Shown here: positions 61,588-64,000 of the stretch, piece after piece
Position numbering within the stretch: the stretch's first letter is position 1
How the letters are laid out: each line of letters starts with the position of its first letter
DNA from: Calcarisporiella thermophila CBS 279.70
Lineage: Eukaryota > Fungi > Calcarisporiellomycota
Length of the DNA: 64,000 nucleotides
Assembly: GCF_041956535.1 (NCBI RefSeq)
Contig: NW_027192194.1
Coordinates: forward strand, 1,050,976 to 1,114,975
Direction: 5' to 3'
The notes under the pieces: model-generated
What the model was told of the DNA's origin: nothing
What the model saw: only the letters and a program-made list of their open reading frames with translations
Database searches by the model: none
Program-made: the position numbers and the translations under genes

Positions 61588-63500
61588 GTAAGGGGTAATC
61601 TCGGTTTCGAAAGCTCGGTAGAATTCCGCCGTCAGTCCATTCGGGCCAGGTGACTTTATCGGGACCTACCGAACGTCTTTCCTCACGTAGGTGAAGTATT
61701 ATGGTTAATTTTTTTAAAAAAAAAATCAGTGGAAACTCTTTGAAAAGATTGTATTTTCCCTTTGGATGTGAGTACTTGCGTCCTGTGGTTTATATACAAA
61801 ATATCGTAAAAGCGAAAGGAGCTTCTTAGCAATATTATTAAATACAAGTGCTAAATCTTGAAAAGCTAAATACTTGGAATGGATTATCTAGGTATTTTAT
61901 GCTTTCTCGAGATTGAAGGTGATTTCTTGATAATTGTCGATCTGGATTGATGAGTTCTTTTATCATTCCTTCTTGGATCTTTTTTCATCTTTTTTCATCT
62001 TTTTCCCTATATGCCTGTTGTCATTGCCCTATGATAGAAATAAATAAATCATATAGAAATTTATCTTTGATTGTAAATTATGTTCTGGTCATTAGCTTAC
62101 TTTTTTTTTCCTTTTAGGACGCGAGATCTTGCTACTTATTTTTGTAGCCGCTTAATATTACTTGCTTGTTGGTATACTATTGATAGCGGTTGAGTCCTGA
62201 GAAAAAACGGCAAACTCTCACGGATGAGTGTCGCCTACGACTAATGCAGTTCCCGATTTTTTTTAAAGAAAGACCTTTATTGAAAAGTACCCTATCCTGT
62301 TAAAAAGGTAAGGTAGCTTCTATGTCAAAATCTCCCAGGTAATGCTCCTGGCCTACCTTGCAGAATCTGGAAGATAGAAGGAAAAGTAAGAAAGAGAGAA
62401 AGAAAAAGATATAAGTGGAAGAGAGAAAAGGTGATGAGGAAAGAGTTAGGAAAGTATGGAAACAGAAATTAGCTTAATAAAGAAGGGGAAAGGAATAAAT
62501 GTGAGAGGGAGGGATAAAAAGTTGTGTGCAACGGTATTAAGATAGGCTGCTTATGTACATGAAATAATGAAGAGAAGGGAAGGATTGAAAAAGTAAAGGA
62601 AAGAAGAGAAAAAAAAAGAAAAAAGGAAAAATATGGAAAAGGATGATAGAGGGAGTGGTATTAATATACAGCGGTGAAGGGTTGGGTGCAGTTCTCAAGC
62701 CGGAGTTGGGACTGGGATTTGATCTTCAGAGGTGTCCTGGGTGAGAATCACAGAATCATCTATGATGTTCACCCAGTTTCCCCTTGACCATTTATCGATA
62801 AAGTCTTTTTTCCGATCCTGTTTCATTGCCATCGCCCACTTGGACTTTATTCCTCGCTTCAGTTCATGGTCAAATTTTTTGGTTATGGCTACCGGGTTGG
62901 GTTGGGCATCGTCCAGCACTAATTCAAGTCTCGAGCGGTATATTATCCACAGGGCTATGTCGTGGCCCAGAGCAACCACTTTGTTGAAGCGTTGGTCTAT
63001 TTGTTTGTCTTGTCCAAACAGTATGTCTTCTTTCGTGGATTCGTGTGGCAGTATTCCAATTATTCGGCAGTTTGTCTCGTCAACTCTTTGCCAGAGTTGT
63101 GCGATAGCTGGGCAGTCTAGAAAGGCATGGGCAATTGTTTCGGGTATTCCTAAGGAACACCTTTTGCAAGTATTTGGATCTCCAGTCCATTTGCTAGTGA
63201 TGATTCCGGTAACTATTTTATGCTTTATAAGTCTCCAGCGAAGGATTCTGTGCTTGGGTTCTGACGGACGACTTTTCCACCTAGCTCATGCCTTCATCCA
63301 TCTGTCAACGTCACAGGAAACGTCTTTCCATTCCTCGGTGATTATGGTTGGCGTATCCTGCTTGTATAGTCTCCCAGCTTTGGTGGTGTAAGCGGTGGTC
63401 TCAAACCCTGCAATAGAACATTTTGTTAAAGGAAAATTGTGTTCGTTACCGACAAGGGGGATACGCTGTGTGGGAGTTTCGGCGCGTGCTACCCTCCCGA

Positions 63501-63906
63501 TTTTTTTTTTTTGTTAAGGGAATTCATTTTATTTTAAAAATAAGATTCCATATAAAGTGATAAAGTCGACAAAAATAAAATATTTCTGCGATAAGCTTAA
63601 TTATATTTGGGCTTTAGTTCTTCGACAAGCTTAATGTATTCTGCTTGAGCATCTTCCTTACTCATTCTTTTAAGATCATTCCAAGCATTCCATTTATATT
63701 TGGCTTTGAAATCAAACATGCCAGGCGCAGCAGTGTCATTATCACCATTAATACCTTGTTTGAAGAGAGCGTACAACTTCAAGAGCTCATCATCTGTAGG
63801 TTTAGAAGTAAACTTTTTAACATCTTCAGATGCTTTAATAAAAGTGGCATTTCCAGTAGATTGAGCGTCAGTCATTTTGAGAAGTTCTAGTGCTTAATCG
63901 ATTCTT
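63501..63906 (-). mobile_element. Processed (retroposed) ACBP mRNA copy flanked by a 19-bp target-site duplication
   Basis: 31-nt 5'UTR, intronless CDS, 84-nt 3'UTR with AATAAA (63533-63528) and A12 (63512-63501). Direct repeats gcgcgtgctaccctcccga (63482-63500) and gtgcgtgctatcctcccga (63907-63925). Confidence 0.9.
63597..63875 (-). CDS. ACB1: Acyl-CoA-binding protein (ACBP), retrocopy with an intact ORF
   Basis: KPTDDELLKLYALFKQ..GDN...PGMFDFKAKYKWNAW...MSKEDA..EYIKLVEELK. Confidence 0.93.
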   Translation of the reverse strand: MTDAQSTGNATFIKASEDVKKFTSKPTDDELLKLYALFKQGINGDNDTAAPGMFDFKAKYKWNAWNDLKRMSKEDAQAEYIKLVEELKPKYN

Positions 63907-64000
63907 GTGCGTGCTATCCTCCCGAGTGACTTGTGACTGTCAAGGTGACTTGCCCGTACCAAAAACCAATTTTCTCGTAACAAAGATGTTACGGGCGAAA

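Follow-up and report, generated by a model that had tools for sequence, protein, structure and literature searches.

A 391-nt cDNA-like ACBP cassette without introns lies on the minus strand, at positions 63513–63903, of a 64,000-nt stretch of Calcarisporiella thermophila CBS 279.70 DNA (the window; contig NW_027192194.1), and it is a processed, polyadenylated retrocopy of a mature cellular ACBP mRNA. We consider it very probable that this copy arose by LINE-driven target-primed retroposition, in trans, into the junction between a LINE and an LTR retroelement. LINE-type retroposition is a known mechanism and, on this reading, the one that applies to the ACBP copy. The locus would then be a textbook-clean and datable case of recent trans-mobilisation of a host mRNA by a LINE of this genome, which implies a recently active LINE enzyme. 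The idea of a gene inside a LINE, put forward in an initial annotation, is replaced here by that of a nested landing pad, with an LTR at tRNA genes and with SINEs and LINEs inside the LTR.

The parent ACBP gene was located on contig C18 (C18:492111-492707) and consists of four exons separated by three GT-AG introns of 65, 77 and 64 nt. When parent and copy were compared exon by exon, 388 of the 391 cassette bases were identical to the four parental exons and all three introns were precisely absent. The copy is very young because only 3 differences are found in 391 nt. Its match to the parent has one defined parental base as its start and stops where the mRNA was polyadenylated, 15–20 nt past the AATAAA; the A-run that follows is untemplated, since the parent reads T-rich past the last base of the cassette. 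The encoded protein is single-domain and matches the Pfam ACBP family (PF00887) with an E value of 3.8e-30 and 104.3 bits (cut-off 28.3), and its closest solved relatives are ACBPs of 86–87 residues. An exact-protein look-up returned no matching record, and an Rfam search at the locus gave a chance-level match only. In a protein search of the whole assembly, the cassette was found together with the exon-wise match on C18 and one distant paralogue, and no second intronless ACBP-like copy, LINE-associated or otherwise, was detected. The initial annotation had described an intronless cassette with both UTRs, a coding sequence, an AATAAA and an A12 tail, and these features and their coordinates are all correct (Table 1). 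It had also proposed a comparison with a parental locus, which the C18 gene now provides, with its three introns and with UTRs that match those of the copy save for one base in the 3′ UTR.

Table 1. Coordinates of the ACBP retrocopy and of the sequences that flank it in the window.
Feature	Position	Strand	Remarks
Dispersed repeat, ~110 nt, left of the LINE	62129..62239		85–88% identical to five other copies
LINE poly(A), A9 (T9 on the + strand)	62258..62266	-	Abuts TCCCGA on the + strand
5′-truncated LINE: C-terminal zf-RVT part of ORF2 and 3′ UTR	62267..63487	-	One in-frame stop; 89–94% identical to sister copies
Target-site duplication at the poly(A) side	63482..63500	-	Spans the LINE/LTR join
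ACBP poly(A), A12 (T12 on the + strand)	63501..63512	-	Untemplated; parent continues T-rich
3′ UTR of the ACBP cassette, 84 nt	63513..63596	-	AATAAA at 63528-63533; A-to-T relative to the parent at 63562
ACBP ORF, 92 codons and stop, intron-free	63597..63875	-	Intact; Ala11Thr (63845) and Gly70Arg (63668) relative to the parent
5′ UTR of the ACBP cassette, 28 nt	63876..63903	-	Identical to parent exon 1
Three added bases (AAG on the sense strand) separating the first parental base from the duplication	63904..63906	-	Not in the parent locus
Target-site duplication at the cDNA 5′ end	63907..63925	-	LTR-derived over at least 16 nt (63910-63925)
LTR 3′ half, positions 74–146 of ~146	63910..63982	+	By alignment to LTR copies elsewhere
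Start of the leader that comes after the LTR in full and miniature elements	63983..64000	+	Continues past the window end

The cassette and its tail stand between two 19-bp direct repeats that differ at two C/T positions, as had been reported at the outset. The certain LTR content of the repeat is 16 nt, and of the outer 3 nt two agree with the LINE end; from the sequence, the duplication may be 16 instead of 19 nt long. Genome-wide, the 19-mer is present as these two copies and as one match elsewhere with a single mismatch. That 18/19 match (L066:1501-1519, equal to G000:C10:833534-833552) was set aside as chance, its context being unrelated and ~0.2 such matches being expected by our estimate. 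What defines LINE-made processed retrocopies was thus found at this locus and in this genome: the parental introns are absent, the poly(A) is untemplated, a duplication of 16–19 bp with 1–2 mismatches flanks the insert, and a LINE with reverse transcriptase and endonuclease is present in the genome (86 RVT_1 matches, along with matches to APE-type endonucleases). Target-primed retroposition of a cellular mRNA in trans, the mechanism that had been proposed from the first reading of the sequence, is upheld by the intron-containing parent, the untemplated tail and the duplication.

In the mechanism we favor, a mature capped and polyadenylated mRNA transcribed from the intron-containing C18 gene would have been the template. 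The target would have been the point at which an older, 5′-truncated LINE copy meets the 3′ half of a Ty3/gypsy-type LTR, and there the + strand would have been nicked after a sequence ending in TCCCGA. The free 3′-OH would then have primed on the poly(A) of the mRNA, with a LINE enzyme carrying out reverse transcription in trans, and a second nick staggered by 16–19 nt would have produced the flanking duplication. As most copies of the window's LINE family have unrelated flanks, neither the responsible enzyme nor any true site specificity is established.

The nature of the target follows from its two flanks. The 75 bases to the right of the repeat occur ~28 times genome-wide. In a dozen loci examined, this unit ends 10–15 nt before tRNA genes of many identities, and at other loci it is followed by a common leader. 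At one of the latter (L051), an ORF with a Retrotrans_gag domain and a zinc knuckle comes after the leader, and a same-strand reverse transcriptase match lies 2.3 kb downstream. Leftward, the unit reaches a TGT start with a purine-rich tract before it at three loci (L043, L045 and L008), and at L043 and L045 it measures 146 nt, has TGT...ACA ends and is preceded by a purine-rich tract common to both. Because of these ends, the purine-rich tract before them and the leader and gag after them, the right-flank unit is, on sequence features, a ~146-nt LTR of Ty3/gypsy type that exists in solo, full and miniature forms, an LTR pair on one element not having been seen. A reading of this unit as a conserved tRNA promoter element was considered and dropped in view of the gag downstream at L051 and the purine-rich tract upstream at L043, L045 and L008. 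LTR positions 1–73 are absent from the whole window, and the missing left half makes the earlier history of the site a complicated one. No tRNA gene was found in the window by ARAGORN.

To the left lies a member of a LINE family with >40 copies at 82–95% identity, the longer of which carry RVT_1 followed by zf-RVT. All copies end in a poly(A) tract and their 5′ ends vary, a classical LINE pattern. The copy in the window retains only the last 1.2 kb and lacks the 5′ 3–4 kb; of its own duplication, only TCCCGA (6 nt) is clearly shared in a repeat search. The initial annotation had placed the insertion within ORF2 of this LINE, with the frame restored once the insert and one repeat are removed and with the gene possibly expressed from the LINE or carried by it. 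The left flank is indeed a true LINE ORF2 C-terminus, and an open minus-strand frame with the quoted residues does run over the join, with one stop later on. The uninterrupted, collinear sister copies that were expected to span the junction do not exist: none spans it and all diverge at window position 63487. Past the equivalent of that position, eight sister LINEs (L002-L007, L018 and L024) are collinear with one another and unrelated to window 63926-64000, and the sister ORF reads on into other residues. Because the sisters carry different sequence there, the open frame over the join, which extends for 25 codons to the right, is not LINE ORF2 and is a matter of chance. In place of ORF2, the right flank holds the LTR and leader that are found elsewhere by tRNA genes and gag ORFs. 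The LINE remnant cannot act as a promoter for ACBP because it is 5′-truncated and lies downstream of (3′ to) the cassette on the same strand, and a role of ACBP as LINE cargo is at odds with the single intron-free ACBP copy in the genome. Insertion into a LINE ORF2 is therefore extremely improbable, and we retain the LINE/LTR junction as the target.

The same flanks bear on whether the LINE and the ACBP copy arrived together. Both are adjacent and co-oriented, and a single reverse transcriptase could have copied 1.2 kb of LINE RNA and then jumped to the ACBP mRNA; chimeras of this kind have been described in a fungus, Magnaporthe (PMC2104539). Such a jump would join the two parts directly. In this window, however, the ACBP poly(A) is separated from the LINE 5′ end by 13–16 nt of native LTR sequence, which recur at the ACBP 5′ end, and the duplication flanks ACBP alone. 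Divergence likewise speaks against a common arrival, the LINE differing by 6–11% from its sisters and the ACBP copy by 0.8% from its parent. A single-event chimera is accordingly very unlikely, and we treat the LINE and the ACBP copy as two events because a target sequence and a duplication stand between them. The left repeat spans the LINE/LTR join, which, together with the divergence values above, suggests an order of LTR, then LINE, then ACBP; we infer the order of the last two partly from divergence.

The contact between the cassette and an LTR raises another route, namely Ty1-type retroposition mediated by an LTR retrotransposon, in which the mRNA would have been copied in a virus-like particle and would have entered with an LTR element or by recombination into one. 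Retrocopies mediated by LTR elements do have LTR-sequence flanks (PMC5470649). The cassette is, however, antisense to the LTR, its poly(A) stands directly against the 16–19-bp duplication, and beyond that duplication there is no LTR sequence on its other side. The signature is moreover the same as that of SINE and LINE inserts in the same part of the LTR (see below). We regard an LTR-mediated origin as highly improbable, and LINE-driven retroposition remains our preferred explanation.

One feature of the duplication is less tidy. Differences amount to 2 of 19 positions between the repeat copies as against 3 of 391 between cDNA and parent (Fisher p ~0.01, calculated with 2/393, before the third cDNA difference was counted), and the repeat is less clean than expected from the youth of the insert. 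If the left repeat is assumed to be ancestral, which the sister LINE copies support at only one of the two sites, then C-to-T changes on the + strand, the strand that corresponds to first-strand cDNA, account for four of the five differences: two lie within the cDNA and two within the repeat copy that adjoins the cDNA end. Two of these four lie in CpG. The C-to-T excess would fit deamination or an enzyme error at the time of insertion, or CpG decay afterwards, and given the five sites it is no more than a lead.

With respect to its fate, the ACBP copy is most likely a newborn processed pseudogene. Relative to the parent, the coding differences are two non-synonymous and zero synonymous, and residue 70 is Arg in the copy, where the parent and the three best solved ACBPs aligned all have Gly. 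Both coding changes thus alter the protein, one of them at a conserved glycine, and the copy gives no hint of purifying selection, as judged from three changes only, too few for a test. The alternative is a newborn functional retrogene, i.e., an expressed second ACBP. Its ORF is intact and the start, stop and poly(A) signal are all kept, as such a gene would need. On the other hand, both substitutions are non-synonymous, the conserved Gly70 has been replaced, the copy brought no promoter with it and what lies upstream is an inverted LTR. From these sequence features we judge a functional retrogene to be unlikely and would expect the copy to lack function as a pseudogene.

The ACBP copy is not the only insert in this part of the LTR. 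Insertion points were measured from the conserved CTGTCAA motif of the LTR, relative to which the first-strand nick for ACBP falls 11 nt to the left. At three loci (L039, L046 and L054), a 336-nt SINE-A with a tRNA-like head is flanked by a 16-bp duplication, with the nick 8–9 nt left of the motif, and at L003 a 5-nt SINE-A stub with T9 has a 17-bp duplication and a nick 8 nt left of it. The window's own LINE family is represented by a 31-nt stub with T11 at L051 (18-bp duplication, nick 17 nt left of the motif), and a 1.2-kb LINE copy with a short duplication is found at L008 (nick ~13 nt left). In every zone insert, the poly(T) is on the LTR strand, i.e., the insert is antisense to the LTR, and ACBP is no exception. 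Genome-wide, 15 of ~102 SINE-A heads lie 21–27 nt from the LTR motif, as compared with ~0.1 expected by chance (an estimate). The zone in the LTR is a real hot spot; it is not an exclusive target, because most copies of the window's LINE family have unrelated flanks. For SINE-A, all seven resolvable cases at the loci examined are at an LTR with a tRNA gene, while the LINE, SINE-B and ACBP cases are at an LTR with a leader and with no adjacent tRNA detected (for ACBP, up to the window end). It is conceivable, and we offer it tentatively as something less probable than not, that the genome houses a LINE/SINE system with regional specificity for a ~10-nt zone in short Ty3-like LTRs at tRNA genes, a system that would also deliver cellular mRNAs to a predictable ‘safe harbour’. 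The C-to-T bias would then reflect editing or enzyme error at insertion.

Several known systems can be compared with this locus. The copy resembles L1-type processed pseudogenes and retrocopies of mammals and dicots in its full-length spliced cDNA, untemplated poly(A) and AATAAA, and further in its 16–19 bp duplication, its intron-containing parent and the extra bases at the 5′ join. It differs from them in its target, which is a retroelement junction and not an AT-rich consensus site. Processed retrocopies of this kind are little documented in fungi (PMC5470649, a 2017 review). Dictyostelium TRE5-A and further LINEs with position-specific insertion upstream of tRNA genes (PMC5006619; PMC3159450) appear to share with the zone described here a narrow pile-up in one orientation, at a set spacing upstream of Pol III genes; at LTRs that abut a tRNA gene, the zone is ~65 nt upstream of the tRNA. 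In contrast to TRE5-A, the zone here is inside an LTR and is used also at leader-followed LTRs without an adjacent tRNA detected in the sequence examined, and the window's LINE family is mostly dispersed. Integration at Pol III start sites is known for Ty3 in budding yeast and for DGLT-A in Dictyostelium, and the LTRs related to the right flank, which stand 10–15 nt before tRNA genes and have a Ty3-type gag as predicted from sequence, appear similar to these; this likeness is about the target LTR and not about the ACBP copy. The MINE and WEIRD template-switch chimeras of Magnaporthe (PMC2104539) are alike in that co-oriented retro-sequences, among them a LINE 3′ part, stand side by side, while target sequence and duplication separate the parts in the present case.

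Further observations were made on the elements involved. On the + strand, at window 62258-62266 and 63495-63512, the LINE poly(T) and the ACBP poly(T) both come after TCCCGA, and the poly(T) of the sister copy L015 comes after TCTCGA; the common TCCCGA may reflect a nick preference or one bond that was cut twice. The ~110-nt repeat to the left of the LINE adjoins a tRNA-like SINE head at L063. Left of this repeat, window 62100-62130 holds a T10 tract and then CCTTTTAGG, which may be the tail of an even older retro-insertion in the stack. Elsewhere in the genome, a single open frame of 1372 aa with APE-type endonuclease and RVT_1 (G000:C3:773114-777719, minus strand) may, from its domains, represent the intact ORF2 of a different LINE family, and further LINE families with open frames of 1246–1456 aa occur on C2, C7 and C34.

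In SINE-A (L039:1148-1499, L046 and L054), ARAGORN sees no proper anticodon in the tRNA-like head, and the tail ends in TTGATTGATC followed by poly(A). This tail is unlike that of the window's LINE family, and because the tails differ, the partner LINE of SINE-A probably belongs to another family. A second tRNA-like SINE head, starting with GCCGTC, abuts the same LTR zone at L014, L041, L058 and L063, including LTRs that are followed by the leader and not by a tRNA. LTRs of ~146 nt, in several subfamilies, lie 10–15 nt before Ala, Pro, Leu, Arg, Glu and Ser tRNA genes (L037-L063, e.g., L039:1501-1654, L044, L047, L054 and L060), and this spacing is what Ty3-like integration at Pol III start sites produces. 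A miniature LTR-leader-LTR form is present at L008. At L052/L056 (G000:C2:556455-556571), two LTRs of different subfamilies stand head to head, their ACA ends only 4–5 nt apart, and together make up a long, imperfect palindrome.
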